Assembly (NCBI GenBank): GCA_950097015.1 | Contig: CATNEN010000034.1 | Coordinates: forward strand, 1,054,001 to 1,118,000 | Reading direction: 5' to 3' | Source of the DNA: Macrostomum hystrix | Taxonomy: Eukaryota; Animalia; Platyhelminthes | Length of the DNA: 64,000 bases | Part shown: positions 23,393-58,297 of the stretch, piece after piece | Numbering within the stretch: position 1 is the first letter of the stretch | How the letters are laid out: each line of letters starts with the position of its first letter | The notes under the pieces: model-generated | Told to the model about the DNA's origin: nothing | Seen by the model: the letters and a program-made list of their open reading frames with translations, nothing else | The model's database searches: none | Translations under genes and position numbers: made by a program

Positions 23393-23935
23393 CTAATTTT
23401 TACTTATGTTAGATTTGCATGATTCATTATTGCTTTATTTTTGTTATTAAAAAGCCGAATGTATTAATGAATATATATCCAATATATCGAATATATCTAG
23501 ATAGTGGCATGATACATTCCATAATCTGTTATGGCAGGTAGAATCCTTAACAATAGCTGATCACAAGACTCTATTATGATCCAAATCTATATCAATTTTT
23601 CCAAATCCCCACCATCACACTAAATAAACTAGCACCCCAATACCTCCACCAATCATCCCAAATCCCTTCACTATCATCCCAATCCCTTCACAAATCTTCC
23701 CAAACCCCTTCACCATCATCCCAAGCCTTAAAACCAATCACCCAATCCAACTATCATTCCAATGCCTCCACCAATCACCCCAATCCTCTAACCATCATAC
23801 CAATGCTTCAAATATCATCTTGATTCCTGTAGTTGCATTACCTACCAATCTAACTTCGCATGAAATCAGGTCCATAAGAATATCCCATCCTATCATGCCA
23901 GTGCATTTTCTCAATCCTGGCGTTTACAGTCAGCC

Positions 23936-25030
23936 ATGGCTGAGCAGCGGCACCAACTCTTGTCGGTGGCAGCCGCCGGACTGGCTGGCCTGACGGCTGG
24001 CCCACTAATCGAGCGCCTAATCCGTTTTGTCTTCCGACGCCTCAAATGGAGCCAACTTAAGCGCCGTTGCCTCCGCCAATTCGACGTGGCCTTTTTCTCA
24101 GGCGGCAGCCTGACGCCGCCGTGCCAAGCTGCTGGTCGCGCCCTAGTCAGCGGCGCTGCCGCCGCCAATGCTGCCGCCGGCGACGCAGACGCAGCCGCCT
24201 ACTGTCCATCGCCGTCAGCTTGCCAGCTGAGTCACAGCGCCGGGCATCCGTATTTCCAACTGATCCGTCAGCTGTTGGTCGCTGAGTGCAGTCTCGACGT
24301 GTGCATGTACACTTTGAGCAGTCCTGAGTTGGCCAACTTGCTTATTGCTTTGAATCGGCGAAAGCCAAAGTCTGTTCGAGTGAGTCGCTTAGGGAGCTCA
24401 CATAGTTCTTGTGAATGCTTGAATCATGATTTAGTCTGATTTCTTGTTGTAATCCTTTTGTAAATGAGTTGCAATTGTGATACTGGAATTATAACCTATG
24501 CGAACAATAGTTTTTAGATGATTATTTAATGGCTTAGGAAAGTTCGGGATTTGTATAAGATATGGGCTCTAGATTTTTTATTTTATGTTTGGTATTACTG
24601 GACCCACTAGAATCCCAGTTTAATGGGATTCGGGTTTGGGATTATTAGACTGACTGGAATCCCAATTTTAGAGGATTAATTGTGGGATTAGGGAGCGCAC
24701 TATTCAATTGTCAACATTCCTAAATCCCAGTTGATCCCAATCCACACCTAGGTTCGCATAATCTGTGACTCTGAGCAGCTGCACAGTCCGGGCAGCGCCA
24801 TCGCTAAGCTCCGCTCATCCGGTGTACCAGTCCGGGCCGATTCAACCTCGTATTTCATGCATCACAAATTCTGCATTATCGATTCCCGGTTGGTGCTGAC
24901 CGGCAGTCTGAATTGGACTGCCCAGGGCACCCTCGGCAACTGGGAGAATGTGGTGGCCCTGGACGATGCCGATGTTGTTGCCAAGTTTAGCCAAGAATTT
25001 AAATGCCTTTGGAATGAATTTTCACATTGA
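23936..25030 (+). CDS. PLD6: PLD6/MitoPLD/Zucchini-family nuclease-phospholipase, 2 exons (23936-24379, 24752-25030), 240 aa
   Basis: N-terminal hydrophobic anchor; CPSPSACQLSH zinc-wing-like motif; SLDVCMYTLS; a GT-AG phase-0 intron joins KSVR|VRIICD; single HKD motif MHHKFCIID followed by TGSLNWT and GNWEN. Confidence 0.93.
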
Positions 25031-25126
25031 AGGCGTTTCTTGTATCATTTCTCTTCTATCTGTGCATTTACTTGTTACTTATTCAAATAATCAAGTAATA
25101 ATCAATGGAACAGAGACACTAGACCA

Positions 25127-25200
25127 CGCCCTAAATGAATGTGGCCTCGCCGCGGAATCGAGCTTAGGGACCTCAGTGCGAGACACAAACGCGTTGACCG
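25127..25200 (-). mobile_element. tRNA-derived SINE, 5' fragment (copy 3)
   Basis: Reverse complement reads AACGCGTTTGTGTCTCGCACTGAGGTCCCTAAGCTCGATTCCGCGGCGAGGCCACATTCATTT (B-box-like). Confidence 0.72.
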
Positions 25201-25738
25201 TATTATCCATTTTTGGATAACGACAGCATTCGTTATAATTAAAAGCAGTGAAGATTCAAAGATGATTCAAACTATTCGAAAAAAGTGTTTTGAGCACTGT
25301 CACAGTGTATTAAAAGCGCATTAAAGGTGGTAGGTACAGTGTAGTAGGTGGGGTTAAACCACTTTACACGACACGCCTACAACACTGTGTAAAACGGTCA
25401 TATTAGTCTTACATTAATAAAATGATGATTCAGCATTTTTAGCTATAATCATTTCTAACTATTTTTACGGTGTTAAAAATACACTGCCATAGCATGAAAA
25501 CTTGCATAGTTAATTTGTCATACTCTTGCATGTCGAAATGAGTTAATCTATTGTAATATTTTGGCAAATAGATAACTTATTAACCAATAGCCTATTTGCA
25601 TATCATAAACATAACACAACGCTTGCATTTTGTCAATACTGTCTTGCTAGACTTCCCTACTGTAGTTTTAAGTGCATTAGAATTGCTGTTTGAAAGTGAA
25701 AGAAAAAAATTGACTCAATTTCAGCCACTCTGTCCGAA

Positions 25739-28700
25739 ATGCTTCGATTGTGGAATTGCGCGTTCGGACCGCAGCTCTATCGGTTCTTTGATGCACGGGA
25801 GGTTGTAAGTGTTCCTTGTACACTTCATTTTACTAAATATCAGTACTATTTAAGTGACTACTTCCCCCTCCCTGACCCTCATTTGCCACAGCTCCTGACC
25901 CTGTTTCATTGACCCTGCCCCTGACCCTCTCTCATTGGCCACTAATCCTGACCCGCCTTCTTTGGCCACTGCCCCTCTTTCCCTCTGACCCGCCGCCCAT
26001 GACCCTCTTTCATTGGCCCCTGCCCCTGACCCTCCTTCATTGTCCCCTGCCCCTGTCCCTCTTTCTTTGGCTCCTGCCCCTGACCCTCTTTCTTTGGCCA
26101 CTGCCCCTGACCCTCTTTTATTGGCCACTGCTCCTGACCCTCTTTTATTGGCCACTGCTCCTGACCCTCTTTTATTGGCCACTGCTCCTGACCCTCTTTT
26201 ATTGGCCACTGCTCCTGACCCTCTTTTATTGGCCACTGCTCCTGACCCTCTTTTATTGGCCACTGCTCCTGACCCTCTTTTATTGGCCACTGCTCCTGAC
26301 CCTCTTTTATTGGGTCAGGTCCGTCACCATGCACTTTATTTTATCTGACTTCTATTTTTTCTTTGTCCTATACTTCCAGTCTTCATTCTATGCTGTGGCA
26401 TGATCTAACTTTGTATTGTAGAGTCAAATCTATCAGCAGAACCTGATGGAGTCTGTGCCAAATTACGTTCTAGGAGCGGTAAGATTATAATCAAAATTAT
26501 AATGGTTCTTTCATGGTTCTTTCGTTCCCTAAATGTGTTCATTTAGGAATTTCTGGCTTTTCTGCAAAACGCCATTTTTAAAGCTCGCCATTCTATCTAG
26601 TTTTCTATCTAATTTTTTAGGCTGAATTCTGCTTCGGGATTGCTAAATACGGCTGGCCATTCTATATGCCCTATGTTGTTAAACGACTAGTTAGTAGCAC
26701 AGGTAAATTTAGTTTTCTTTCTGTCAATAGTCACTTATAATGCAACGTAAACTACTATAAGTAGTAGAGGTAGATTTTCGATTCATTTTTTTGTCAATAA
26801 ATATTTGCGATTTTAGGTGAACGAATTCGAGTTCGCAGCGTCACGTATGTTGTCTACTCAGCTGGTGTGCTCTGCCTGTTGGCCTGCGCCGTACTTCTTC
26901 GCGGAATCGGTCGGGCATTGAACCCGACCTATTCAGAGTTCATCGCTGTGCTAGGCCGTGCTCAGCGCAGCCTGACCACTGAGAACAAAGAGGCGCTTTC
27001 CAGGTTCGATTTCGAATTCTGGGCCTGGCCAGTAGAATTCGACGCCGCCGGCGGTGGCGGACAAACGACTAGACGAGTTCGTCAACATCCAGCCGTCGAT
27101 GCCAATCCGGGCGCTGGCGGCCCCAGCGATTGGTTGTTGAATCTGTGCGCAGCCGGCCTAATTCGCTCGGTCGGCGTGCGGCTAACTTACCCAGGTTGCA
27201 CCAGTCTGATGAATGCCGTAACCAGGCCGTTCGTTCAACAGGTGCCTTGTCAAAATTATCTTTGTGATAATAATTGCCAGATTTCAGCGATTTACTGGAT
27301 CTTCACAAGAGAGTAGTAGCTACTTACGTTAAAAGCGAATGTGAGGTGCAGCGGGTCTCTTAAATATCAAAAGAGAGCTGCGGTTGCACACTTTATGATC
27401 GCTTGAAAAATTGATTGGCGGCTCACTTATAGAGCAAAGGGAAGCTGCGGCGGTTCACTTAAAGATCAAAGGTGAGCTGCGGCGCCCCACTTAAAGATGA
27501 AAGGTGAGTTACGGCGGCTCAATTACAGATCAAAGGGAAGCTGCGGCGGCTCAATTACAGATCAAAGAGAAGCTGCGGCGGCTCAATTACAGATCAAAGT
27601 TGAGCTGCGGCGGCTTACTTGCAGATCAAAGGGAAGCTGTAGCGACTCACTTGCAGATTAAGAGAAAGCAGATGCGCTTCATTACATTTCTAAGTGATGT
27701 AAAGTTTTTTAGGACTATCGAATGGACTTAAGTCGTTTAACATATGGAAAAAACAAAAATTAAAACAGGCTCGCTCCAGGCTGCGCCTAGAGCACGGCGC
27801 CAATCGTTATAAGCTGCGCACTCCGAATGGCTACGAAGTTGAATTATTCTTTGTTGATAAGCGAGCCAGCGGCGGAGCTAATGGCTCCACCTTGATTGTG
27901 TGCTGCGAGGGCAACGCCGCTTATCCGGAGATTGGCGCCACCGGCGTGCCTCTTGACGCTGGCTACTCCGTCATTGGCTGGCATCATCCGGGATTCGGTG
28001 GCAGCACGGTGTGTTGCTCGCAACAATTTTCCTAATAAAAAACAATAATAATTGCAGGAAAGCTGCTGACAATGGTACAATCGTCATTTAGTGGCACTAG
28101 ACCCGCAGCCAGCAAGGAGGCAATTCTGCCCATTTCGCTGACTCCTGAGCACACACGCACACAGATACTGTACGCAGGCATACGCTCACACAGGTGTGTA
28201 CATCTGCCCTGACTTTCTCATTGTCAGGCAGTGTACACTTACACTGTGCTTTGGAGGTTGGCCCTCGAGGGCGTAAATTGCAAGACAAGCCCTCAAGCCT
28301 TCTCTCCGCGGCTGCGCCCCAAAATGAATGTGGCCTCGCCGCGGAATCGAGCTCAGGGACCTTGGTGCAAGGGAAAACGCGTTAGATCGACCTCCCAATA
28401 ATTTCCTAATTCTGAATTAATTTTTTCGAGAGGATCTCTATTATTTTCTTCGCGAAAAAATTCAGGGTCTTCCACTGCCCAACACAGAGCAAGAGTTCAT
28501 CAGTACAGTGCTACAGTTTGCTGAGCAAATGCTGCGATTCCGTCTGAAAGACACGGCCATTCTGGCCTGGTCGATTGGCGGCTACACGGCTAGTTGGGCT
28601 GGAGCAAACTATCCAGAGCTAAAATATGTCATGCTGGATGCCACATTTGACAACATTGAAGAGCTGGCTGTCAAAGCCATGCCCAAGTTTGCTAGCGGCC

Positions 28701-31700
28701 TGGTGCGAGAGGCTATAAAACGCGAGATGAATCTGAACAATGCGGAACTGCTGTGCCGGTAAGCCATCAATGAAATCAAGCTGTCATTCGTGTGGTGTCG
28801 CAGTTTTCATTTTTCCCGTGAGATAATAAATAATAATAATTGCAGGAGGGCTGCGGGCAGTGGCACATCATTTGGTGGCACTAGACCCGCAGCAAGCGAG
28901 GAGGCAATTCTGCCCATTTCGCTGACTCCTGAGCACACACGCACACAGATACTGTACGCAGGCATACGCTCACACAAGTGTGTACATCTGCCCTGACTTT
29001 CTCATTGTCAGGCAGTGTACATTTCACTGTGCTTTGGAGGTTGGCCCTCAAGGGCGTAAATTGCACGACAAGCCCTCAAGCCTTCTCTCCGCGGCTGCGC
29101 CCCAAATAAATGTGGCCTCGCCGTGGAATCAAACTTAGGGACACTGGTGCGAGAGGCAAACGCGACAACCGCTCTGCCACCGACCCCTGTTCCCTTAGGA
29201 AACTCTTATCCAAGAGAGTCCTGCAGTTCTCGGATGCCCTTAGGAAACTCCTATCCAAGAGAGTCCTGCAGTTCTCGGATGCCCTTAGGAAACTCTTATC
29301 CAAGAGAGTCCTGCAGTTCTCGGATGCCCTTAGGAAACTCTTATCCAAGAGAGTCCTGCAGTTCTCGGATGCCCTTAGGAAACTCTTATCCAAGAGAGTC
29401 CTGCAGTTCTCGGATGCCCTTAGGAAACTCTTATCCAAGAGAGTCCTGCAGTTCTCGGATGCCCTTAGGAAACTCTTATCCAAGAGAGTCCTGCAGTTCT
29501 CGGATGCCCTTAGGAAACTCTTATCCAAGAGAGTCCTGCAGTTCTCGGATGCCCTTAGGAAACTCTTATCCAAGAGAGTCCTGCAGTTCTCGGATGCCCT
29601 TAGGAAACTCTTATCCAAGAGAGTCCTGCAGTTCTCGGATGCCCTTAGGAAACTCTTATCCAAGAGAGTCCTGCAGTTCTCGGATGCCCTTAGGAAACTC
29701 TTATCCAAGAGAGCCCCGCAGTTCTCGGATGCCCTTAGGAAACTCTTATCCAAGAGAGTCCTGCAGTTCTCGGATGCCCTTAGGAAACTCTTATCCAAGA
29801 GAGTCCTGCAGTTCTCGGATGCCCTTAGGAAACTCTTATCCAAGAGAGCCCCGCAGTTCTCGGATGCCCTTAGGAAACTCTTATCCAAGAGAGCCCCGCA
29901 GTTCTCGGATGCCCTTAGGAAACTCTTATCCAAGAGAGTCCTGCAGTTCTCGGATGCCCTTAGGAAACTCTTATCCAAGAGAGCCCCGCAGTTCTCGGAT
30001 GCCCTTAGGAAACTCTTATCCAAGAGAGTCCTGCAGTTCTCACTCGTTAGGCTTGGTCTGATGCTTTCGTGAAGATTCGTCGAGGTCGGACAAAGACGTC
30101 TGAGATTTTTGGGCTCTCGGGTGTCTCGTATTTATAGCCAATCTGGACCCCTCCCAGCGATGCTATTGGCTGGGCTCATTCGAGCTCTCTCATTGGCTGG
30201 AATGAAATCATTCAGCGGGTGTGCCACAACAGCGGTGAAAAACCTTGGAATTGGAGATAACTGCCAACGGATTGCCTAGCACAGACGCTAGCAGACACCC
30301 TAGCTCCCAATCTTAACTCAACTAAAAAGATAGGACTTAAGCTAGGCTATCTAGCGACCCACTGCATTTGGATGCCTAAATTCTTCACTGGAATTTCTAT
30401 AATTATGGACAGAAAGTTTCCTAAATTCTGTTCAAGCCGTACTAGAATTTTCCTACAGTCTTAGTGGAATTTTCCTACTCTTGAGTAGGTTTCCTACGGT
30501 TTTTAGTGGAATATCGATACATTCTTAATTAGACTTTGTCTGCATACTTTAGTGTAATTTTACTAAACTTTTAGTACAATTGTGGTGTTAAAATTTTAAC
30601 GGAATAATAATTAAACTCCTTTAAAACAAGCTTGAACTTTTAAGATGGTTAAATCTTTATTAATTTGAATCTCTTTTATTTTTACTGTCAGTTGTCATCA
30701 AGTATCGATGTCTGTAAAAGCTATTAAAACAATGCAGATAGTAGGGCAAAGCAACACAGTTTGCTGCATCACATCATTAAAAAACGAGTGATGCGTCTGG
30801 TGATGTATTCGGAATGCACTTTTGCAAGCTAATGATCGTCTGTGCAGAGTGCGCAAGAGCAGCATCTAATAATTCTCATATGCAAGTCTAGTTTTGTTCT
30901 TGTCTCTTTATGTAGATGATCACCATCAATCAGTCTAGATCAGCTTCTACTCTGAGTCAAGACTTGGGGTTTGGAATGACAATTTTAAATGAGCTCAAAA
31001 CTAGCTTATATATGGTTTGGCAAGCCCGACCGCTTGAGCGACGGTGCGTGTTTTCTACTGCGTAAAACTGGGCCGATATAAAATCTACCCTCAGGCTGAC
31101 CCATTTTGTAACCAGATTTAACTATTGCTAAGCTGGCTAAAATATGAAAATGGATTAATGGGTTTTAGCCCAGATTTTAGGCTCTATAAACTGACAGAAA
31201 AAGTTGTGGTTCACGGAGAGCGTAATTTCGTATGTATTTTGCATATGGCAGCCCTAGTTATTCTTTCAAAAAATTCGCACGAAATCTGACTCAAATGTCA
31301 GACTGGTCCATAATATTCGCCGGAATGTGACCCGGATACACCACATAGAACGCGTCATGTTTTTCTGTTTTATGTTTCTGGAAACTCTAGAGGCGTGCAG
31401 CACGACTATAAAGTACCAGTTGATTCAGTATTGTTTTTTTATGGCTCCTCTTCGTCATCGAAGTCGTCATCTTCATCTCCAGTCTCCGCAGCTGGAGACG
31501 TCGGTGTTTGATTGTCGTCAAAGTTATCTGATGCGGCTGTGGCCATAGAATCGTCCAGGTCAGCGGCGTCGGAGACGCATGCTGCCGCTTGCCATGCGGC
31601 CAATCGGAGTCGCTTGTCGGCTGCCAGAAAAAATAATGGATAGGCCAGGCAGGCGGCGTAGGCGATCCACTTGGCGTCTGCCAGAGTCCTTGCCGACGGT

Positions 31701-34700
31701 TGGGCACTCGCCATGCAGTGAAAGTTCAAACAGAGACAATGTGCCAGGCTACCCAGCATGTAGGGTGACCAGAATACGACTGCTACGAAGAATAAGCACA
31801 GATTGATCGTGCACGCAGAGCGCTCCTCCTGCAGCATTCGACGCCATGAGTTACTTGCTGATCCGCTTCTGTTTTTTTGCAAAAATTTAAGTGAATAAGC
31901 GAGTCATGGATGAACTAATGAGTTTGGTATGCCTATAACTAGCCACCACTAGTTCGTTAAAAATCAGTTTAACCCGAAACATCAGTGCAAAAGAGCGACT
32001 CGCTGTCATGCGAGCGCCATGCTTGCTCACCACTATCTTGTCACTAGGCACACTCGCATATTAAGTAGGCAGTCCTTACGTCTCCCATTGTCCGCTGCGA
32101 GCTGTCTGAATCTCCACTTCTGGTTCTCTGGCCAGTGCCGCAGTGTCCGCTGCTGACGTCTGGCCCTGCGCATCCGTCGTCGTTGACGTGGCAGCCGCTG
32201 CTGCTGCTGCCGCTTCGTATAGCGCGCGGCCGTGTCTGGGACAAACAGCACAATCTTGTGCCAACCTGTGCAGCGCCCTGTCGGTTGTGTAGCTAGCTGG
32301 TAGTGAGGCCTGCCCACGATTAGGACTGTGATGCTGTCGCCACCAGTTTGCGTTTCCGCTGCCGAATGTAACAGTGCGATTGTACTGTCGAGAGTCCAAA
32401 GTCTGACAGCTCTGGCTTCCAACAATCTGGCCAGCGACTGATTGTTGGCCACCTGAGTTTGTCAGCGTTTCGTCGTTCGCCTCCGGAATGGTTGCCATGT
32501 GGTACATTTCCAGGAAAATACCGCTACCTCCGCTACTGTCGAGTGTCAGAGCTGCAGCTGTGTCTGTCGGGTGCAGAAGCAGGGTCTCAGCTGTAGTGTC
32601 GCGTTGCATTTCGATCACACTTGGTGACCAATGCTCCTGCTCATGCTGCTGCTGCTGCTGTTGTTGCAGCTGTTGCATTCTTTGACGTCTTATTTGTCGA
32701 CGCCGGCGTCTAGAAGCCGCCTTCATCAGGCCGGCGGTGGCAGCTTCGGCATTGCCGTCGCTGCGACGAAGCGCAGCGAATTGGCGAAACGCCATCAGCA
32801 GCAGGGTCAGACTGGCTAGGCCGGGGAGGCCGTAAGACATGCAGGCGCGTAGGATAACAAAGTTGGGATCTCGGTGCAGGCAAGCGCCCCCTGTCACATC
32901 GAAGAGATCTTCATAACTGAAATTTTGCCAATGAAGTCTTTATACTACTAACATCCGTCCACCAAACGCTCCTTACTCGACACCTTGCTTTTGATCTTGA
33001 ATAAAGCGGTCAGGTACTAGTTGAAACTTACTGCTTGCTGATTGCAAACTCGGCTGTAGTTTGTATAAAGCTAACACTCCATGGTGCGCCAATCTTCAGG
33101 CAGGTAGATCCGCGCCCAGTAGAATGTGAATAGCTCATTGGATAGCGCAATCTTAGCCAGGTGTCTATAGCGCAGCCGAGGCAGTGCAGGAACACCAGGT
33201 TGCATAAAAAGGTGTCCATGTATAGCCAAACTATGCACAGTGTGTCTAGCAGCTGCTTGTACTTTTCGCCTGACAAACGATTGGTCAATTGTATAAGTTT
33301 CCATAGAGCATGGTTCAAATTTCGTTCAATTCAACTCTTTGAATAATACGAATACGATAGCTTCAAAAACAAGTTCATCAGCTAATCGATACCATCAATT
33401 TTAATGGTAGTCTAGCTAGGCACAAATTGAATTTCATGATTATGCTATGAATAATAATAATCTTCTTTCCACAAGCTAAAGAGGATTAAAGATTTTTGTT
33501 CGGAGAGTAAAAATCTACACAAAATTTCTCTTTGGACTGCCAATATTTGGATCCATACTTTGCTTACATAGCCTGTATACATATATCCATAATCAGGTTA
33601 GTGGGAGAGGGTGTGTTCAGCCACGGCTTCAGATTCTAATCGCTAGATGATCCGCCTCTGGTCTCCGCCGGTGAGCGTTTCCTCTGTTTTTCTTCTTCAT
33701 TGGCGAAGAGAGAGAGTTGTAATTGCATCAAAGGAGGGATAGAAGAGAATTGTCTGTCGCTTTGGGATCACTTCATCTCGAAGTGAAGGGATTGGTTCTC
33801 CAGCCCCTCCCCATTCGAGCCGATTGCTGTAGGATCAATCGCCTCTGGGATAGAAGTAGGATTATGAGAGATTAAGAAAAGCGAAAGTGATGGGCAGTGA
33901 GGCGTTTGTGTCGAATTCCTGGATCATGAAACTTGCCGCATGCGCAAACCAAAGCTTTTCTGCAACCTGTAGTTGGATTTATTCGCGCCACGTTGCTCGT
34001 TATATTTAAGCTATGTAGAGCTTAGATTTTGCGTGCCAGTTAGCGTTGATGAATATCACACCTGTATTTTTATTTCTATTCCTACAAATTTGTGCTTTTT
34101 ATAATAGACAAGCATCAGTTGTCTTCGGAAACAAGCAATAGAAGGAGGGCCAGACAAAGTGGGAAGAGGTCAGTGAGAACCAGAATGGGAATTGGTCAGT
34201 GAGAAGCAGAGTGGGAAGAGGTCAGTGAGAACCAGAATGGGAATTGGTCAGTGAGAAGCAGAGTGGGAAGAGGTCAGTGAGAAGCAGAGTGGGAAGAGGT
34301 CAGTGAGAAGCAGAGTGGGAATTGGTCAGAAGAAACGTAAATGAACATAAGTTAAGAAAAATGAAGAAGTTTGAAGCGATAGTAAGGTGTCCAAAATATT
34401 TAAGTTCAATTTAGATAACAAGCACAATGCACAGTCGTGAATGACTTCAGAAGCAGAAAAAAATGGAGAGAAATGGTGAGACGGTTGGTGTAAACAGATG
34501 CTAGAAGTAAAAGAATTAGATAAAGAGTGAGTCAAAGAGAGGGAAGGAGAGAACGCCAACATAGAATCGACAAGTAGTGAAAAAATTGGACCACGGTAAC
34601 CAGAAGCGCAGTGGCAACGCGGACCCGCATCAATCAGAATGCGGAATGTCGATACTGTTTTCAAGCTCCCATTTTCATCCTTATAGGCGCTATAGGCGAA

Positions 34701-41322: not shown

Positions 41323-41368
41323 AATGACCGCCAATCAATCCGCAGAGATCGACTGCAGGCCAGCAGGA

Positions 41369-42102: not shown

Positions 42103-42139
42103 TAAGGAAGCCTGTGCTAGTTCTGTTCATGACAGCCCT

Positions 42140-42140
42140 T

Positions 42141-42219
<79 letters not shown>

Positions 42220-42220
42220 G
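42140..42220. repeat. (TCTG)~20 microsatellite in the Rab21 3' region
   Basis: Direct reading of the sequence. Confidence 0.98.
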
Positions 42221-43070: not shown

Positions 43071-43269
43071 CCGCACCCGGCTTGTATGTCGGTGACCAAA
43101 CTGTCTAGTTGCTGTTTAATCTCACCAGTCGTGTTACATTCGCACTCTAAAGCAGATGAGAAACAATAATTATTTACGGTTGTAGGAACGCGTGCACCTG
43201 GACCGTACTGCCAGCTGTGCGCTATACTCTTACCCGTATTTTGTAGTGTTTTTACATTTTCCTAGTCAG

Positions 43270-45026: not shown

Positions 45027-45352
45027 AGTCAGATCCCACACATCCCAGATCCCACACATCCCAGATCCCACACATCCCAGATCCCACACAGCCCAGATCC
45101 CACACATCCCAGATCCCACACATCCCAGATCCCGCACATCCCAGATCCCACACATCCCAAATCCCACACATCCCAGATCCCACACATCCCAGATACTACA
45201 CATCCCAGATCCCACACATCCCAGATCCCACACATCCCAGATCCCACACATCCCAAATCCCACACAGCCCAAATCCCACACAGCCCAGATCCCACACAGC
45301 CCAAATCCCACACATCCCAGATCCCACACATCCCAGATTCTACAAATCCCAG
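45027..45352. repeat. 16-bp array
   Basis: Unit CCCAGATCCCACACAT. Confidence 0.96.
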
Positions 45353-45784
45353 ATCGGATTTGACCTTTGCACTGAACCCATAAAGTAAATTTCAATTTGG
45401 AGGAGCTATGCAAACCCAGGGTGACAGCGCATTAGTGACAGATAAAAACTGACTGACAAAGGAAGGGAGGAGGCGGGGGAAGGGCAAAATTAGGGCGAAC
45501 TGGAGTTGGGACGGGCCGAGACAAAGCCAAGGTACGTCCCCTGCTGGCAACCAATCAGAACTGACCTGCCAGACTCAAAGACTCTGGCACAGCTAATAAA
45601 CTTCTGTGCTTAAGATTTAGACAGGCAGAATTTTAACTTACTTTTCATGACCTTCTTTGAGTCGTTCTTTTCATCCCATCTGCCGCCTCTTTCGAAGAAA
45701 GTTGTTCCTCGGGACTCCGCGACCTCTCGGTGACTTTTTCAGCGCCTGGGTCCGGAAGGCTTCGCCAGTTTTCGCTATTGTACG

Positions 45785-48700: not shown

Positions 48701-51700
48701 ATTGAACTAGCATTTTAGCCCCCCCCGACCAGGAAGCATTCAAAATTTCCTAGCGATCTCAATGTCACAGCGCAATTCAAGTTCACAGTTGAATGAAATC
48801 GGGAACCGGAGTTTAAGCCTAGTCGATGTCACTAACTTAGTGCGAGCAATATATAGACTAGTACTCACAAGCCCCTGAATCAGTGACGTAATAACATGGC
48901 CCGATTACATTACTTAATGCACACTCTGCGCACAGTCGGTGCAGGAATTTTCAACCGCCGTAACCATGGAAACAACGACAGTCAGCTTCGACGATTGCAC
49001 GAAGTGTCTTCATCGCTGGCCATCTCAGCTGGGGAGGCTCCGGGCAGGCGCCGCCTGCTAGAGTCAGCCTCTGATCCGAACGCGACCTACTACAATTACT
49101 TGTGCGAGAGGGTCAATGCGAGCACCCGCACTGCGGTGGCCTGGGAGAATTGCGACGCAGAGAAAGCGACAGGGAATCTGGGCGGCTGGATTGTGCTGTA
49201 CATTGTGTGCACCATCATCATCTTCATTGGTGAGTGCGCAACTAACCATATTGTAATATATGCTGGAGGGCTGCCCGCACTTGCACATCATTTGTACACT
49301 GGCACACGCTCAGACTGGTGTCGGATGGTCTATAGGATCTGAGACCATTTTGTTATCATCGGGTTCATTATTATTGGGTTAGCCCTCTCGGGCGTAAGTT
49401 TTACAAGCCCACAAGCCCACAAGCGACTGCGCCTAAAATATTTTAAATGGACTCTAAGAGCCCAATTCGAGACGTTGCAGGGACATTGTGTTAGAGGCAA
49501 ACACGTTAACCGCCCGCTAAGCAAGTAAACCGCGAATAAAGGGGTCTGTGTCAGAGCGGTCAGAAACGAGCTCGATTCCGAGATGAGGCCACATTTATTT
49601 AAGGCGCAGCCGCGGAGAGAAGGCTTGGGGGCTTGTCGTGCAATTTACACCCTTGAGGGCCAGCCTCCAAGGCACAGTGAAGGACACTGCCTGACGATGA
49701 GAAAGTCAGGGCGGATGTACACACCTGTGTGAGCGTACGTCTGTGTACAGTATCAGTGTACGTGTGTGCTCAAGAGTTAGCGGAATGGGCAGAATGGCTC
49801 CTCGCTGGCTGCGGGTCTAGTGTCACCAAATGATGTGGCATTGCCCGCAGCCCTCCTGCAAATATTATTATTCTTGAGCCAGTATTAGATGATATTAGAA
49901 GATATGAAGATTTTAGGAAAAGTTATCCTCGTGCCATAGTTTAAGCCCTACATAAAATCGCACCTTGGTAAACTAATAAACTAAAAAGTAAACTGACAGT
50001 TACAAGCTTAGAAACCCAGACGCATAAATCATTTGAGTTCCAGTTATCCTATGCTCATGCGGCTTCCTTCCGCTGAGCTCACAGTGTGACCATGGAATTG
50101 CTAACTCAAACTATTATAGTAGAAATTTTCAAGGCAAATCACTGCCCATAGATTCTCATAGGATGGGGTGGGTCAGTTTGCTTGGCTGTGCTCATCCGTG
50201 GCTGAGCACACTAAAGGGCGAGTGTCTATGCCATGAGCCCCCCAGGCCATTAGGCCTCTTTAATGACGAGCCTGTGAGACCTGTCTTCTCTTACCTCTCC
50301 TCTCCCCCCTCTCCCCTCCTCGATCTCCGCCCTGATTCCAGAGAAGCCTTCTCTAGCCTCGTTGAGCAGAGCTGAGCAGCCTGAGGCTCCTCCTCTGTCT
50401 GACCTGAATAAAAGTTCCTGTTCAGAATCAGAATCATCTCTGACAGCGCGAGACTGGCTTGTCATAGCTGGCGATCAAAAGCATGTTTCATAGGCCTATT
50501 TTATCATTTTGACAATGAGGGCTTCCACTCTATATTCTGATAGTGAAGATTTCCTACGCCTGATTGTAAGAATCAGTTCGTTGTCTTGGCAACCGTCTTT
50601 TAGGTAAATGGGGAGCCGTCAACTTTGAGATCTTGAAGCCTATGTGATCCTGAATGAATCTTTAAGCGAACTTGTAGATTGTTGGCAGATCGCTTCAGGA
50701 TTGTCGTCAGATTTCTTCAGGATTGTTGTCAGATTTCTTCAGGATTGTTGTCAGATTCATTCAGTCAGATTCATTCAGAATTGTTGTCAGATTCCTTCAG
50801 GATTGTTGTCAGATTCCTTCAGGATTGTTGCAAGATTCCTTCAGGATTGTTGTCAGATTTCTTCAGGATTGTCGTCAGATTCCCTCAGGATTGTTGTCAG
50901 ATTTCTTCAGGATTGTTGTCAGATTTCTTCAGGATTGTTGTCAGATTCATTCAGAATTGTTGTCAGATTCCTTCAGGATTGTTGTCAGATTCCTTCAGGA
51001 TTGTTGCAAGATTCCTTCAGGATTGTTGTCAGATTTCTTCAGGATTGTTGCAAGATTTGTTCAGGATTGTTGTCAGATTCCCTCAGGATTGTTGTCAGAT
51101 TTCTTCAGGATTGTTGTCAGATTCATTCAGGATTGTTGTCAGATTCCTTCAGGATTGTTGCAAGATTCCTTCAGGATTGTTGTCAGATTTCTTCAGGATT
51201 GTTGCAAGATTTGTTCAGGATTGTTGTCAGATTCCCTCAGGATTGTTGTCAGATTCCTTCAGGATTTTTGTCAAATTCCTTTTTAGTTGTTAGCAGATTT
51301 AATTCAAGTCATATTTAACAACACTTTTCCAGCCGTGGCCATTGTGTGCGACGACTTCTTCGTGCCCTCGCTGGAAATCATCTCAGAGAAGTTGAAGCTC
51401 ACAGAGGATGTGGCCGGAGCCACCTTCATGGCCGCTGGCAGCTCAGCGCCTGAGCTTTTCAGCTCTGTGGCAGCCGTTTCATTCGACTCGGACGCTGGGG
51501 TTGGCACCATCGCGGGGTGAGTAGAATCTCCCCCTACCCTGTCTGATCTCACCCTACCCTGTCTGATCTCACCCTACCCTGTCTGATCTCACCCTACCCT
51601 GTCTGATCTCACCCTACCCTGTCTGATCTCACCCTACCCTGTCTGATCTCACCCTACACTGTCTGATCTCACCCTTCCCCTGTCTGATCTCACCCTTGCC

Positions 51701-54700
51701 TGAATGATCTCACCCTACACTGTCTGATCTCACCCTACCCTGTCTGATCTCACCTTACCCTGTCTGATCTCACCCTACCCTGTCTGATCTCACCCTCCCC
51801 CTGTCTGATCTCACCCTTGCCTGAATGATCTCACCCTACACTGTCTGATCTCACCTTACCCTGTCTGATCTCACCCTACCCTGTCTGATCTCACCCTACC
51901 CTGTCTGATCTCACCCTACACTGTCTGATCTCACCCTTCCCCTGTCTGATCTCACCCTTGCCTGAATGATCTCACCCTACACTGTCTGATCTCACCCTAC
52001 CCTGTCTGTTCTCACCCTACACTGTCTGATCTCACCCTTCCCCTGTCTGATCTCACCCTTGCCTGAATGATCTCAAATTTTTTTCTCACGACAAAATAAA
52101 CAAAAATCTCACTGAGCTGTCAATTAAGATTCTGATAAAAAAATGGACACTGCAGATCGGCTGTGTTCAACCTGCTGGTGATCATCTCCCTGACTGCCGC
52201 CTTCGCTGGCAAGGTGAGTTCAAATCTATTCGGTCCTAATGAATTCCCGAGCTCTTTTTACCTCGAGACTTACGAATGCAATGGCGGTCCGTCAAATCCA
52301 AGCTAGCGGCCCGTCTAATCCAAGCTAGCGGCCCGTCAAATCCAAGCTAGCGGCCCGTCTAATCCAAGCTAGCGGCCCGTCAAATCCAAGCTAGCGCCCC
52401 TCCAAATCCAAGCTAGCGGTCCGTCAAATCCAAGCTAGCGCCCCTCCAAATCCAAGCTAGCGGCTCGTCAAATCCAAGCTAGCGGTCCGTCAAATCCAAG
52501 CTAGCGGCCCGTCAAATCCAAGCTAGCGGCCCGTCAAATCCAAGCTAGCGGCCCGTCAAATCCAAGCTAGCGGCCCGTCAAATCCAAGCTAGCGGCCCGT
52601 CAAATCCAAGCTAGCGGCCCGTCAAATCCAAGCTAGCGGCCCGTCAAATCCAAGCTAGCGGCCCGTCTAATCCAAGCTGGCATCCCTCTAAATCCAAGCT
52701 GGCATCCCTCTAAATCCAAGCTGGCATCCCTTTAAATCCAAGCTGGCATCCCTCCGAATCCAAGCTGGCATCCCTCCAAATCCAAGCTGGCATCCCTCCA
52801 AATCCAAGCTGGCATCCCTCCGAATCCAAGCTGCCATTTCTCCAAATCCAAGCTGGCATCCCTCCGAATCCAAGCTGGCATCCCGTCCGAATCCAAGCTG
52901 GCGCCCGTCCAAATCCAGGCTGCATCTCTCCGAATCCAAGCTGGCGCCCCTCCAGATAAAACGTGGCAACCCTCAATAAATGTCCTGGCCACGTGACTGC
53001 CTGTAAGCTAATGAAGCCCCGGATTCGAACTCGGTAACCTTGGTGCTATAATATCCTTGTCGCAGATTCTTCACCTCGACTGGAGACCCCTGGCTCGCGA
53101 CTCCATCTTCTATCTGATCTCCATCGCCTACTTCATTGTCATGATGTATGACACAGTAGTGCAGATCTGGGATGCAGTTGTACTGTTGGTTCTCTACGCA
53201 ATCTACATTGTCATCATGGTGCTGAATCCGCGGCTGATGGACAAACTCGCCGAGCTGGAGAAGAAGTGTCTCTGCCATTGGTTAGACAGAATTTCGCTTT
53301 GCTTTACTGGAGCAATTAAATTGCCTCAGGTCTATTCAGAGAAATATTCTGCACACACATGTTAGACGCGAGTTTGAACAGTGAGACACAATAAAAACAT
53401 GTTAGACGCGAGTTTGAACAGTGGGACACAATAAAAACATGTTAGACACGAGTTTGAACAGTGGGACACATAAAAAACATGTTAGACACGAGTTTGAACA
53501 GTGGGACACAATAAAAACATGTTAGACACGAGTTTGAACAGTGGGACACAATAAAACATGTTAGACACAAGTTTGAACAGTGGGACACAATAAAAACATG
53601 TTAGACACGAGTTTGAACAGTGGGACACAATAAAAACATGTTAGACACGAGTTTGAACAGTGGGACACAATAAAAACATGTTAGACACGAGTTTGAACAG
53701 TGGGACACAATAAAAACATGTTAGACACGAGTTTGAATAGTGGGACACAATAAAAAAATGTTAGACACGAGTTTGAACAGTGAGACACAACAAATTGGCC
53801 TTCAGAGAGTCAGAATTCTAAAGCGGCAGGATACTGCTCACATTTTCAGCCGGGTTCAGCCAGCCGAAGAGGAGCAACAAGTGGAACCGGTTGCCGAGGA
53901 ATCCGAAGCTGATACGGGACGGAGGGTGAGACTGCGGGGGAAAGGGAGGGTAAGACTGCGGGGGGAGAGGGAGGGTAAGACTGCGGGGGGATGGGTGGGT
54001 GAGACTGCGGGGGAGAGGGAGGGTGAGACTGCGGGGGAGAGGGAGGGTGAGACTGCGGGGGATGGGTGGGTGAGACTGCGGGGGATGGGTGGGTGAGACT
54101 GTGGGGGAGAGGGAGGGTGAGACTGCGGGGGATGGGTGGGTGAGACTGTGGGGGAGAGGGAGGGTGAGACTGCGGGGGAGAGGGAGGGTGAGACTGCGGG
54201 GGATGGATGGGTGAGACTGCGGGGGATGGGTGGGTGAGACTGCGTACTGCATTGACGGGAGTAAGCCTGTGAAGTGAGGACAGTTGAATGATGGACATCT
54301 GCACCCTCCGCAGGCCTCCGTGCTGTCCGCAGCCAGCGCGCACAGCCTGGAGAAGCGGCAGTTCCGTCACGATCGCCGGAACTCGGTGCTGCTAAACCTG
54401 CACAGCTCGCCATCCGGAATGCGCACTGAACGGAGGGGCAGCGTGGCGCAGTCCACTGTGAGTACCTTCAGGCTGTTAGCTATCTTCTTCAGGCTGTTTG
54501 CTATCCTCTTCAGGCTGTTTGCTATCCTCTTCAGGCTATTAGCTATCCTCTTCAGGCTGTTTGCTATCCTCTTCAGGCTGTTTGCTATCCTCTTCAGGCT
54601 ATTAGCTATCCTCTTCAGGCTGTTTGCTATCCTCTTCAGGCTGTTAGCTATCCTCTTCAGGTTATCAACTATCTTCAGGGCCTTTGTCTACTCTACACTC

Positions 54701-57700
54701 TCGTTATTAGGGTATGCATCATTATCTTCCCATCCACTCTCCACTTTGGCTATCTTCGTCGGGGTATTATTAGTAATAGTCTATTGGCTGACCAGCAGGT
54801 ATGCACACCCTTTAAATGCACATTCGTCCCTGCGCTGTCGCGCCTCGTAGCCACCTCACTCCTTGCTCTTTACTCTCCATATTCTCCTATTGGCTGACCA
54901 GCAGGTATGCACACCCTTTAAATGCACATTCGTCCCTGGGTTGTCCCGCCTCGTAGCCACCTCACTCCTTGCTCTTTACTCTCCATATTCTCCTATTGGC
55001 TGACCAGCAGGTATGCACACCCTTTAAATGCACATTCGTCCCTGGGTTGTCCCGCCTCGTAGCCACCTCACCCCTTGCTCTTTACTCTCCATATCCTCCT
55101 ATTGGCTGCCCCACTGTCTAAAAGTACATTCGCGTCCACTGGTCGCGAATGTCGGAAGGTCTAATTTATACGCTCGTATTTAAAGCTAGTTTAACTCAGT
55201 AAAATAGGAAGTCGCTTAAAATACGTTCCTCCTCAGATTTTGGAGTCTTGCATCATTCCCGAGGAAAAAAAGCAGGAGGAAGTGGACCTCGGCACGCACG
55301 AAGTCACATTTCAGTTTCAGGAATTTGAGACCTCCACAGTGAGATTCGCGTTAATGAAGCCAATCGTAAAAAACGAGTTTCTCTCTCATACATTGCCTGC
55401 TAAATCTTCAATGACATGTGTACTATGAGTAGCTGTTGCGAATTTCTAATAATCTAATAATCTAATAATCTAATTTTTACTGATAATCTAATTGAATTTG
55501 ATACTGCAGCTTTTGTTTGGTTTGACTTGTCTAAAAATCGCTTTTTATAATATTATAGCTATTCATCAGTAGTTTGTCTTAGTAATAAAAAACCTAAAAG
55601 GTTGGGCACTCAAAAACGCACCAGATTGCGACCGAGGCAGCTGCAGCCTTAAGTACATCAATCCGTTGCGACAGCGGCGTTGGCGCTGGCAGCGACTCCT
55701 GCAGACCGTCATCGGCCGAATCAGCGGGAGACGTGCAAAAGGAAGGAGACTCTGGTGACCGACGGCGGAGGCCGCGGCGGCTGCCTCAAAAGCCGGTGCC
55801 CGACGGGGCGATCGGGGAGCTTGGGCTGAACGGTCAGCGACAGGTCCTGGTCAGTCGACACTCGTTGCCACCGTTGCGCCTTAACCAGGCGCCTGTTCTT
55901 CAGCAGCAACAGCAGCAGCAGCTGGACACCCTGCCGCCCATTCACCTTCAGCAACTGCGCAATCAGGGCCAGCAGCTCTGTCGACCACCTTTTGAGGTTG
56001 CCGAACTTTTGGAATCCGACTTGAAGCTCCCAAGGGTCCTTCAACTGGCCGCAACCTCACTGGGTCCTTCAACTGGCCGCAACCTCACTGGGTCCTTCAA
56101 CTGGCCGCAACCTCACTGGGTCCTTCAACTGGCTGCAACCTCACTGGGTCCTTCAACTGGCCGTAACCTCACTGGGTCCTTCAACTGGCTGCAACCTCAC
56201 TGTGTCTTTCAACTGGCCGCAACCTCACTGGGTCCTTCAACTGGCCGCAACCTCACTGGGTCCTTCAACTGGCTGCAACCTCACTGGGTCCTTCAACTGG
56301 CTGCAACCTCACTGGGTCCTTCAACTGGCCGCAACCTCACTGGGTCCTTCAACTGGCTGCAACCTCACTGGGTCCTTCAACTGGCTGCAACCTCACTGGG
56401 TCCTTCAACTGGCCGCAACCTCACTGGGTCCTTCAACTGGCCGCAACCTCACTGGGTCCTTCAACTAGCCGCAACCTCACTGGGTCCTTCAACTGGCTGC
56501 AACCTCACTGGGTCCTTCAACTGGCTGCAACCTCACTGGGTCCTTCAACTGGCCGCAACCTCACTGGGTCCTTCAACTAGCCGCAACCTCACTGGGTCCT
56601 TCAACTAGCCGCAACCTCACTGGGTCCTTCAACTGGCTGCAACCTCACTGTGTCCTTAAATCGGATCCTTCGAAACATGCCTAGGCAAACTTTTATTTCC
56701 GCTTGAGGCGGTACAGCTAACTCACTCTAACGAATATGAAAGAAAAGTTCAACGAAAAATGCTCCCAGCTTCTTTGTTAGAAAAGTCAAAACATTGCATC
56801 TTTCAGTCCACGCTGAAAGAAGAGGACCCGGCTGCTGGCGCGAGCAACAGCGACATTTTTGCTAACGGAAGCAGCAATGCCAGGAAGAGGCCGGACAGCA
56901 AAACTGGAGGCGAAGGCGACGGCGATAGAGAAGGCGATGACGACGATGACGATGAAGACGCCAGGATCAAGTGCTGCAGCTGCTGCTCCTGCTGCCCGGA
57001 CATCCGTGGCGCTCCGCCGACGAAGTCAGAAACAATGACGCCGGCCAAGTGGGCTGTCTATGTGCTGAAGTGGATCGTCTTTGTGCTGGCCTTCCCATTC
57101 CTGTGCTTGTTCAGCTGGACCATTCCCGAGTGCTCAAAGGAGCACCTCAAGTGAGCTCGCGGGATGACTGAGCAGGGCGCACAGACAACATTGTCTGGGG
57201 GGTAGCTGTAAAAGTACATCACAAGCGCACCTTCAACTTCTACAGAAAATACTTCATAGCCAGCTTCTTGATGTCGGTGCTGTGGATCGCTGCCCTGTCC
57301 TTCGGCATGGTGACTGTGGTGGCCAGGCTGGGCTGCCTGCTCGGAGTTGACACTTTCGTGATGTCCCTGGTGGTGCTAGCAGCTGGCACCAGCGTGCCGG
57401 TGAGGGCCCAGCTGCTCATATTGACAGGTTTGATTGGTTTAGACTCACAAGCAGCTCACCAACCTTCTCTAAAATGCCGCTCAGGATCTGCTCAGCTCCA
57501 TCATCGTTGCCAGGGATGGCTTTGGCGACATGGCCGTGTCGAACGCCATCGGCTCCAACGTGTTCGACATCAACATGGGCCTCGGCCTGCCGTTCTTCAT
57601 CCGGCTCTGCATCAACAAGATTGTTCCGCTGGACATGTTCAGCGACAATGAGAGGGTGAGCTGCGGACCAAGGACACCCCACAGGACACCCACTGTGCCT

Positions 57701-58297
57701 GACACTACCCTGTCCCGGACTCCAATCCACGGGACACCCACTGTCCCAGACTCCAATCTACGGGACACCCACTGTCCCAGACTCCAATCCACGGGACACC
57801 CACTGTCCCAGACACCAATCCACGGGTCACCCACTGTCCCAGACACCAATCCACGGGTCACCCACTATCCCAGACACCAATCCACGGGACACCCACTGTC
57901 CCAGACACCAATCCACGGGACACCCACTGTCCCAGACTCCAATCCACGGGTCACCCACTGTCCAATCCACGGGTCACCCACTGTCCCAGACTCCAATCCA
58001 CGGGACACCCACTGTCCCAGACTGCAATCCACGGGACACCCACTGTCCCAGACACTAGTAGCCCACTAGCCACAACAATCCGCATTGCAGAGAAGCTACT
58101 GCGAAGGCCACATGAAGATGATTCCACACGTCAAATTCGGTATTATTCTAATCATACTGCTAGTGATCGCTATTGCAGTGATCGGAATTGCCAGATTCCG
58201 TCTAGGCAAGATCATTGGCGTATCGTTCTTCATCCTGTACATAGCGTTCCTAGTGTACGCGTTCTGTCAGGAATTTCTCTGCAACTACGACTGCTGA
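45785..58297 (+). CDS. SLC24A: K+-dependent Na+/Ca2+ exchanger (NCKX, SLC24 family). Firm exons: 48936-49229, 51333-51516, 52156-52213, 53066-53280, 53850-53925, 54284-54457, 56807-57150, 57246-57399, 57485-57655, 58091-58297. Probable exons: 45785-45932 (signal/TM0), 55237-55338, 55625-~55996
   Basis: Alpha-1 repeat [20 protein letters not shown]...GTIAGSAVFN; alpha-2 repeat LAAGTSVPD...[15 protein letters not shown], with the Asp after GTSVP associated with K+ dependence; WRPLARDS motif; exon phases are consistent. The first exon and loop exons are less certain. Confidence 0.88.
45935..46137. repeat. 14-bp array just after the putative NCKX exon-1 donor
   Basis: Unit GATCTGAGATGTGG. Confidence 0.96.
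46205..47909. repeat. ~60-bp tandem array (~28 copies) with variable T-run
   Basis: Unit AGCTAGTCATGCAGTCAAGGTG(T)5-8ACAGACGCACTAATCTCTGCACCATAATTATC. Confidence 0.98.
49541..49872 (+). mobile_element. tRNA-derived SINE, near full length (copy 6), in an NCKX intron
   Basis: GGGGTCTGTGTCAGAGCGGT...GAGCTCGATTCC...CTGACGATGAGAAAGTCAG...CCAAATGATGTGGC...GCCCTCCTGCAAATATTATTATT; short deletion in the tRNA head. Confidence 0.85.
50695..51265. repeat. 22-bp array
   Basis: Unit TCAGGATTGTTGTCAGATTYCT. Confidence 0.96.
51535..52075. repeat. 21-bp array in an NCKX intron
   Basis: Unit CCCTACCCTGTCTGATCTCAC, starting ~19 nt after the donor at 51517. Confidence 0.96.
52290..52950. repeat. 22-bp bipartite array in an NCKX intron
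   Basis: AAATCCAAGCTAGCGGCCCGTC switches to AAATCCAAGCTGGCATCCCTCC near 52670. Confidence 0.96.
53355..53790. repeat. 40-bp array (~11 copies) in an NCKX intron
   Basis: Unit ACATGTTAGACACGAGTTTGAACAGTGGGACACAATAAAA. Confidence 0.97.
53920..54244. repeat. G-rich 24-25-bp array beginning at an NCKX splice donor
   Basis: Units GGGTGAGACTGCGGGGGAGAGGGAG / GGGTGAGACTGCGGGGGATGGGT. Confidence 0.95.
54466..54680. repeat. 21-bp array
   Basis: Unit CTTCAGGCTGTTTGCTATCCT, ~9 nt after the donor at 54458. Confidence 0.95.
54781..55110. repeat. 106-bp unit, three tandem copies
   Basis: CTATTGGCTGACCAGCAGGTATGCACACC... starts at 54781, 54887 and 54993. Confidence 0.95.
56033..56655. repeat. 28-bp array (~22 copies)
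   Basis: Unit TCCTTCAACTGGCYGCAACCTCACTGGG. Confidence 0.97.
57670..58055. repeat. 31-bp array in the last NCKX intron
   Basis: Unit CGGGACACCCACTGTCCCAGACACCAATCCA. Confidence 0.94.

Follow-up and report, generated by a model that had tools for sequence, protein, structure and literature searches.

Spliced-leader trans-splicing of an ABHD16A-like gene in a head-to-tail run of four genes of Macrostomum hystrix

The mRNA of an ABHD16A-like gene of Macrostomum hystrix receives the Macrostomum spliced leader (SL) at the AG acceptor at 25723-24 on the plus strand (AATTTCAG). All positions are those of the window, the whole 64,000-nt stretch of DNA that was analyzed. The gene belongs to a plus-strand run in which PLD6/Zucchini-like, ABHD16A-like, Rab21, and Na/Ca-exchanger genes follow one another head-to-tail, and direct reading confirmed both the coordinates given by the initial annotation and the AG that it had placed just before each start ATG, at 23928-29, 25723-24, 41365-66, and 45741-42. 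Minus-strand genes flank the run, a GPCR gene at 11.7-13.2 kb and MIER from 63.1 kb. No gene was found on either strand in the three intergenic gaps, leaving the four genes adjacent on the same strand, and Rfam and tRNA scans of the window returned nothing. We consider it likely that the locus is nothing unusual for Macrostomum: a cluster of conserved genes whose transcripts become mature mRNAs by SL trans-splicing.

RNA evidence came from Logan contigs (de Bruijn assemblies, k=31) over 22400-25878, from four runs (X1 to X4) belonging to two studies; contigs of this type carry no information on the ends, strand, or level of an RNA, and nothing can be concluded from a hole in them. In all four runs the contigs carry AAGACTCAATTTATTGCAT, or its last 12 to 15 letters, as a loose end before 25724, and this sequence equals the 3' part of the Macrostomum SL. 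The trans-splicing that had been proposed for this AG is therefore borne out by SL letters joined to it in four RNA runs. The initial annotation had identified no upstream exon for PLD6 or ABHD16A, and in the RNA contigs no cis-spliced upstream exon is used at either acceptor. One could suppose that the SL letters reflect an assembly chimera formed at a shared word, since Logan builds its contigs by de Bruijn assembly and thousands of transcripts share the SL as a hub. However, the junction is identical to the base in four runs from two studies and falls at a canonical TTTCAG acceptor; the SL-bearing contig of X4, 2057 nt long, runs from exon 1 into letters at 26422, where exon 2 starts, as do those of X1 and X2; and a k=31 graph would be expected to retain the 12 to 23 SL letters that are present. 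We give the chimera almost no credence.

The M. hystrix genome holds 23 exact copies of the 35-nt M. lignano SL, many of them in arrays, and in the SL RNA gene the leader is followed by a GTAAG donor and a U-rich Sm-like site. Within the window, no SL-like sequence was found at three or fewer mismatches. The genome thus has an SL RNA gene with a splice donor, and the leader is not encoded beside its target. SL splicing has been reported for 30% of the genes of M. lignano (PMC8629364) and for 10-20% of those of M. cliftonense and M. hystrix (PMC10468722), and the published Macrostomum acceptor motif is [T/C]TNCAG (PMC8629364). The motif ends 50 nt or less upstream of all four start ATGs but does so for only about 10% of all 1159 ATGs of the window, and so the four acceptors exceed chance.

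The PLD6-like gene (23930-25162, plus strand) has its first exon at 23930-24379, a GT..AG intron at 24380-24751, and a second exon from 24752 to at least 25162, with the ATG at 23936 and the stop codon at 25028-25030. The RNA joint 24379>24752 in X3 and X4 shows the intron skipped. Exon 2 matches PLDc_2 (E 2.9e-21), with the HxK motif within HHKFCIID, as well as the solved structures of mitochondrial cardiolipin hydrolase/Zucchini (E 8e-22), and the best named matches outside Macrostomum are vertebrate PLD6 proteins, at 40-50% identity. A single HKD PLD-like domain, an N-terminal hydrophobic anchor, and PLD6 as closest relatives uphold the original identification, and the gene is predicted to encode a PLD6/Zucchini/MitoPLD protein.

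In X3 and X4 the PLD6 contigs first match at 23929, the G of the AG at 23928-29 (TTTACAG, plus strand), and ahead of this point lie 20 and 23 letters, themselves unread, that do not match. This is the geometry seen at the proven ABHD16A site, and because the contig patterns are equal, the SL is probably added to PLD6 mRNA at this AG. The contigs have no RNA depth upstream of PLD6, at 22400-23907. The terminal AUG of the SL would be in frame on PLD6, 6 nt before ATG 23936, and would add 2 codons.

Exon mapping against M. lignano together with the RNA contigs gave an exon model for the ABHD16A-like gene (25725-40673, plus strand, with a probable 3' end near 40673): 25725-25804, 26422-26478, 26621-26702, 26817-27241, 27769-28008, 28466-28758, 37631-37988, and 40172-40345. 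The ATG is at 25739 and the stop ends at 40345. The short second exon, at 26422-26478, corrects the initial annotation; in the RNA contigs exon 1 joins letters located at 26422. Measured from the acceptor, the mRNA contigs are 2038 nt in X3 and X4 alike. Searched one at a time, as were those of the other genes, the exons match ABHD16_N (PF22990, 3.1e-14) and, at 3e-4 and 21 bits, below the 25.8-bit cut-off, Abhydrolase_1 (PF00561). The two matches sustain the identity that had been assigned, without separating paralogue A from paralogue B. On this mRNA the SL AUG lies in another frame and begins an overlapping upstream ORF of 35 codons, and therefore the true start would have to be reached by leaky scanning. 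Intron 6 contains, in antisense and so outside the plus-strand run, a rhodopsin-type GPCR-like gene (31442-36274, minus strand), which has blocks conserved with M. lignano, minus-strand ORFs, and 7tm_1 pieces in the correct order, each singly below the Pfam cut-off.

The Rab21 coding region (41369-42102, plus strand) consists of two exons, at 41369-41662 and 41767-42102, the second of which codes for a terminal CC prenylation motif. The protein belongs to the Ras family, and its best named relatives are all Rab21, at 72-91% identity; these and the C-terminal CC support the name given at the outset. Three AGs at 41344-41366 on the plus strand are candidate acceptors (41344-45, 41357-58, and 41365-66). 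The last of them, proposed originally within CAGCAG (41361-66), is present, but the match to the motif is CTGCAG at 41353-58. The AG at 41344-45 coincides with the start of the M. lignano Rab21 gene model. We think it fairly probable that Rab21 mRNA is SL-spliced at one of these candidates.

The fourth gene, of the Na/Ca-exchanger family and called NCKX in the initial annotation, occupies 45785-58297 on the plus strand, from its ATG at 45785 to the end of its stop codon at 58297, and its introns are inflated by minisatellites. Na_Ca_ex matches fall in four exons, two of them above the Pfam cut-off. The best match among solved structures is NCLX, and the profile matches reach the family level only; the alpha-1 motif, which we take to be NCKX-like, is a lead. 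The candidate acceptor at 45741-42 on the plus strand (TTTTTCAG) fits [T/C]TNCAG, and an SL AUG added there would lie 42 nt ahead of ATG 45785 in the same frame, extending the coding sequence by 14 codons. SL splicing at this acceptor is somewhat favored, to the same degree as for Rab21, and the exchanger gene most likely has its own promoter.

The nearest proteins are those of M. lignano. The initial annotation had suggested a check of synteny in related species, and the order of the four genes is indeed kept on M. lignano scaffold NIVC01001708.1, where the neighbor corresponding to the exchanger carries PF01699. All three M. lignano copies retain the PLD6-ABHD16A linkage, and such synteny is to be expected of two congeners. 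When the intergenic regions were aligned with those of M. lignano, exons alone aligned, at 67-80%. The starts of the M. lignano gene models were considered as a proxy for SL sites; those of Rab21 and PLD6 lie 0-2 nt from the AG, but the proxy was dropped because the ABHD16A model starts 20 nt upstream of the AG. One further PLD6 locus, consulted for linkage outside Macrostomum, had no ABHD16A neighbor but is uninformative. A search of the literature for the M. lignano gene identifier found no mention of it.

Upstream of ABHD16A, unspliced RNA runs through the acceptor, defining a transcribed outron (25297-25724, plus strand) of at least 428 nt. The X3 contig covers 25297-25753 at a depth of 5, versus 63 for the ABHD16A mRNA contig, and the X4 contig covers 25362-25626. 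These contigs are not DNA contamination, because the PLD6 intron and the region upstream of PLD6 show no depth. PLD6 RNA extends to 25162 or beyond, and both X3 and X4 lack a contig at 25196-25296. Because this 100-nt hole parts the outron from PLD6 RNA, the contigs speak neither for nor against a polycistronic PLD6-ABHD16A precursor. Transcription of the ABHD16A pre-mRNA thus covers 428 nt or more ahead of exon 1, and this outron is removed and the 35-nt SL joined at AG 25723-24; PLD6 is very likely processed in the same way at AG 23928-29, with the SL AUG in frame.

A dispersed-repeat fragment at 25127-25195, at the PLD6 3' end, breaks the RNA contigs, with numerous loose ends and word depths of 720-1240; further copies lie at 28318-28383, 29098-29164, and 49569-49606. 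By eye it resembles a reversed tRNA 3' end; ARAGORN calls no tRNA.

Operons of Macrostomum have been defined as genes on the same strand, with the downstream gene SL-spliced, that lie less than 1 kb apart after removal of repeats (PMC8629364). The first gap, between the end of PLD6 RNA (25162 or later) and the ABHD16A acceptor, is at most 562 nt, and by strand, SL, and distance PLD6-ABHD16A is a predicted operon under this definition. About 680 nt separate the ABHD16A RNA end (~40673) from the Rab21 acceptors, of which 382 nt are a 30-bp minisatellite (40940-41321), leaving ~300; this pair is also a predicted operon by distance, if Rab21 is SL-spliced. The third gap spans 3640 nt between the Rab21 stop and the exchanger acceptor, or ~2.5 kb minus tandem repeats, and exceeds 1 kb, in line with the earlier view of it as the weakest link. 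The operon-like trans-spliced run that had been put forward stands in part: the SL is on ABHD16A and probably on PLD6, but no contig bridges the ABHD16A outron to PLD6 RNA. After repeat removal, the first two gaps (~300-560 nt) are several times the mode of ~100 bp found for Macrostomum operons (PMC8629364).

We place co-transcription of PLD6 with ABHD16A slightly short of an even chance. The contrary account, in which there is no operon, each gene is transcribed from a separate promoter in the preceding gap, and SL addition only trims off an outron measuring tens to hundreds of nucleotides, receives a little under half of our belief; it overlaps that part of the preferred reading, SL maturation of a conserved cluster, in which co-transcription is left undecided. 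Separate promoters would agree with the lack of contigs at 25196-25296 in X3 and X4, even though the outron further downstream is covered, but holes are common in these contigs at depths of 3-5. An outron of ~430-560 nt is ordinary for a non-operon trans-spliced gene, as known from C. elegans, and by eye there is a TATA-like TATAATTAAAAG at 25234-45, just before the outron contig starts. The word depth of the ABHD16A mRNA contig is about four times that of PLD6, a weak argument in the same direction, and in other animals PLD6 is germline-biased while ABHD16A and Rab21 are broadly expressed. Of the 8 sites in the two species, 7 have a sense CCAAT no more than 200 nt before the acceptor, versus a background of 11-15%. 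However, this pattern was spotted post hoc, it is absent at the neighboring MIER acceptor, a diluted test over 264 kb was not significant (10/44 versus 15%), and the outron RNA starts upstream of the ABHD16A CCAAT; as promoter marks, the CCAAT boxes are only a lead. The first two gaps, moreover, lie within the published operon distance.

The most ambitious model has one promoter upstream of PLD6 driving a four-gene polycistron of ~34 kb that SL addition resolves at each AG. It draws on the shared strand between minus-strand genes on both flanks (GPCR and MIER), on the acceptor motif before all four ATGs, and on the gene order kept in M. lignano. Nevertheless, we regard it as very improbable, given a Rab21-exchanger gap of 3.6 kb (~2.5 kb minus tandem repeats, beyond the 1-kb limit) that measures 4.8 kb in M. 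lignano, Rab21 and exchanger acceptors that are putative, and the fact that 93% of predicted M. lignano operons hold two or three genes only (PMC8629364). In both species a CCAAT with good NF-Y flanks precedes the exchanger acceptor by 140-190 nt, which also speaks, weakly, against it. We assign a similarly slight chance to the entire PLD6-ABHD16A-Rab21-exchanger run being one conserved transcription unit across Macrostomum. If it were one unit, the dosage of a piRNA-pathway nuclease would be tied to lipid and endosomal housekeeping genes, and the SL AUG would tune translation gene by gene, in frame on PLD6 and with an overlapping upstream ORF on ABHD16A.

The 3'-terminal AUG of flatworm SLs reportedly serves as an initiator. 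The in-frame SL AUG on PLD6, and the one that would be in frame on the exchanger, resemble this arrangement, but it is not needed on either because both genes have their own ATG, and on ABHD16A the SL AUG is out of frame. The closest comparison is with the M. lignano system (Ustyantsev & Berezikov 2021, PMC8629364), with which this locus shares the identical 35-nt SL ending in AUG, acceptors fitting [T/C]TNCAG, same-strand genes conserved with human genes, and, in the first two gaps, repeats that inflate an intergenic space of less than 1 kb after their removal. It differs in species, in adjusted gap length, and in a third gap that is too long; the published definition is distance-based and is itself no demonstration of co-transcription, there or here. 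C. elegans operons, including hybrid ones with internal promoters (Blumenthal & Gleason 2003; Allen et al. 2011, as cited in PMC8629364), are alike in that leader trans-splicing caps the downstream genes and unrelated housekeeping genes are linked, whereas the intercistronic distances here are several times larger and Macrostomum has no dedicated SL2-type leader. Leader identity therefore cannot separate an operon from outron-bearing single genes in Macrostomum.

The initial annotation knew of no earlier description of the linkage, but the idea that it is notable is not supported: such operons take in about 15% of M. lignano genes (PMC8629364), the four genes have no evident functional relation, and their shared order is what congeners should have. 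SL trans-splicing and operon-like clusters are already documented in the genus, there is no new mechanism here, and nothing at the locus departs from descriptions of Macrostomum. The building of PLD6 or ABHD16A reporters in Macrostomum depends on locating the true promoter. For annotation, the value lies in the true 5' ends of two genes, proven for ABHD16A and probable for PLD6, and in an SL AUG that would supply an in-frame start on the latter and opens an upstream ORF on the former.

Four genes lie head to tail on the + strand, and reading the sequence directly bore out every coordinate that the initial annotation had assigned to this run. The PLD6-like gene (exons at 23936-24379 and 24752-25030) has an HKD motif and matches both PLDc_2 and solved Zucchini/MitoPLD structures; its exon 1 is 58% identical to the nearest protein, which is from Macrostomum lignano. 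The ABHD16A-like gene matches ABHD16_N, with an alpha/beta-hydrolase fold match that is below Pfam's cutoff; the exon model, built against M. lignano, has eight exons and 1,695 coding nt. Rab21 has two exons, the named relatives nearest to it are all Rab21, and its exon 1 is 91% identical to the nearest protein (M. lignano). The fourth gene, previously called NCKX, belongs to the Na/Ca-exchanger family, as its Na_Ca_ex segments indicate, but the subfamily label was not confirmed, the best solved match being NCLX.

Minus-strand genes bound the run, a DDE transposase and a G protein-coupled receptor (GPCR) upstream and MIER downstream. The region 21033-22270 contains the DDE_3/HTH transposase open reading frame (ORF) (21033-21866, − strand) and a perfect 52-nt inverted repeat (21056-21107 versus 22219-22270); the inverted repeat suggests a recent DNA transposon, located 1.7 kb upstream of PLD6.

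Spliced leader (SL) trans-splicing and operon arrangement are routine in Macrostomum. In M. lignano, 30% of genes are SL spliced and 15% are in operons (PMC8629364); M. cliftonense and M. hystrix have the SL in common with M. lignano, and 10 to 20% of genes are SL spliced (PMC10468722). An exact search of the 220-Mb, 42-contig M. hystrix assembly with the 35-nt M. lignano leader (sequence from PMC8629364) gave 23 copies genome-wide, many of them arrayed in tandem. Downstream of one copy are a GTAAG donor, a U-rich Sm-like site, and a hairpin, as expected of an SL RNA gene. On contigs C15, C17, and C42, the exact copies are mostly spaced 11.6 to 11.7 kb apart. A further 26 SL-like copies with one or two mismatches, scattered over the chromosomes, may be pseudogenes or retrocopies of SL-bearing mRNAs. 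The repeat core GCAGAGCCCCTC..GGGCTGATCCGCGGG is found directly upstream of an SL RNA gene of M. hystrix (L001, 1440-1480) and within the PLD6-ABHD16A gap of M. lignano (L008, 12860-12900); thus, this repeat family is common to both species.

The initial annotation had placed a splice acceptor near each of the four start codons and had read these as candidate trans-splice sites. The published acceptor motif, [T/C]TNCAG, scored when it ended ≤50 nt upstream of an ATG, preceded all four start codons versus ∼10% of the ATGs in the window. For Rab21, however, the match was CTGCAG at 41353-58 and not the AG originally marked at 41365-66.

We mapped Logan contigs of four runs from two studies to 22400-25878. 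The PLD6 intron (GT..AG) was skipped, and there was no depth in that intron or in the 1.5 kb upstream of PLD6; thus, the runs are RNA. In all four runs, ABHD16A exon 1 contigs carried AAGACTCAATTTATTGCAT, or its last 12 to 15 letters, immediately before 25724, and exon 1 continued with the letters found at 26422. AAGACTCAATTTATTGCAT corresponds to the 3′ portion of the SL, and the last G of the SL falls on the G of the AG at 25723-24. No SL-like sequence was found within the 64-kb window. From these results together, ABHD16A is SL trans-spliced at this acceptor, as had been proposed. Two PLD6 contigs began to match at 23929, the G of the AG at 23928-29, after 20 and 23 unmatched letters (known by length only); such an overhang is what a k=31 assembly retains of a common leader. 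It is therefore very likely that the SL is also added at the PLD6 acceptor, and for this gene the trans-splicing reading is nearly confirmed.

The SL ends in AUG. On PLD6 this AUG would be in frame, 6 nt before the gene's own ATG; on the exchanger, if SL spliced at the candidate AG (45741-42), it would likewise be in frame, at a distance of 42 nt from the ATG. In the ABHD16A mRNA, which is proven to carry the SL, the AUG of the leader is not in frame with the gene's own start codon. It begins a 35-codon upstream ORF (25725-25804 plus 26422-26451) that enters exon 2 and overlaps the true start codon, which is 14 nt farther downstream; ribosomes presumably get to the latter by leaky scanning. 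The PLD6 model deposited for M. lignano (L008, 9985-10030) is 5′ partial and has no ATG. There, the SL AUG would be out of frame if the SL were joined at the AG at 10000-01; 13 nt upstream of where the model begins, there is an in-frame ATG.

PLD6 contigs end at 25113-25162, inside a dispersed repeat (25127-25195). An unspliced contig (25297-25753) crosses the ABHD16A acceptor at ∼8% of the depth of the mRNA contig, and a second run covers 25362-25626; thus, the ABHD16A outron is at least 428 nt long and comes within ∼100 to 135 nt of PLD6 RNA. No Logan contigs were found at 25196-25296, a hole that is uninformative at such depth. Read-through from PLD6 and a promoter directly past the PLD6 3′ end fit the outron RNA equally well. 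The M. lignano operon rule requires a gap of <1 kb after repeat removal and an SL-spliced downstream gene, and by this rule PLD6-ABHD16A is a predicted operon. Both ABHD16A mRNA contigs are 2,038 nt counted from the acceptor, which, given the exon model, puts the 3′ end near 40673, ∼680 nt (382 nt of it minisatellite) from the putative Rab21 acceptors; this pair would be a predicted operon if Rab21 is SL spliced. The Rab21-exchanger gap is 3,640 nt, or ∼2.5 kb without tandem repeats, and is not a predicted operon. The rule is a distance criterion and does not prove a shared transcript. In addition, gaps in Macrostomum operons have a mode of ∼100 bp, whereas the first two gaps here are several times larger. 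We tentatively consider a PLD6-ABHD16A operon plausible; inclusion of the exchanger in the same operon is unlikely.

A lead against a single promoter, to which we give little weight, was a sense CCAAT that preceded the SL acceptor, proven or putative, by 27 to 195 nt at seven of eight sites in two species (background, 11 to 15%). The sites are at 23734-23845, 25584, 41331, and 45551 in the window and at 9930 and 13061 (L008) and 17547 (L005) in M. lignano. The pattern was spotted post hoc, CCAAT was absent upstream of the acceptor of the neighbor gene MIER, and a diluted 264-kb test of this genome gave no significant enrichment (10 of 44 versus 15%).

The proposed check for synteny in a related species found the four genes in succession, with order and orientation unchanged, on scaffold NIVC01001708.1 of M. 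lignano (L008, then L005), and PLD6-ABHD16A adjacency was retained in each of the three M. lignano copies. Such synteny is consistent with an operon, yet it is also simply expected between two congeners. In DNA alignments, exons were 67 to 80% identical, and intergenic sequence was unalignable. A (TCTG)n microsatellite lies 40 to 100 nt past the Rab21 stop in both species (42141-42224; L005, 12941-13183), in flanking 3′ sequence that is otherwise unalignable. The 8.9-kb ABHD16A intron contains, in antisense orientation, a rhodopsin-type GPCR-like gene (31442-36274, − strand), the four exon blocks of which have 70 to 81% DNA identity to the corresponding M. lignano intron; the surrounding intron is unalignable.

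The repeat at 25127-25195 has copies at 28318-28383, 29098-29164, and 49569-49606. By eye it resembles a tRNA 3′ end in reverse; ARAGORN called no tRNA at 25127-25195. Its RNA word depth was 720 to 1,240 in the transcriptome runs; copies are thus embedded in many transcripts. Every contig breaks at this repeat, at the PLD6 3′ end. The PLD6 CCAAT is carried by a 21-bp minisatellite. The MIER acceptor GATTTCAG has a 32-bp minisatellite ≤90 nt upstream (L010, 355-760, − strand, past the window end), and the acceptors of PLD6, Rab21, and the exchanger likewise have minisatellites directly before them. The minisatellite at 45029-45355, which precedes the first exon of the exchanger, is the reverse complement (75 to 84% identity) of that at 45941-46134, at the start of the exchanger's first intron, so exon 1 is flanked by inverted repeat arrays that could pair in the pre-mRNA.
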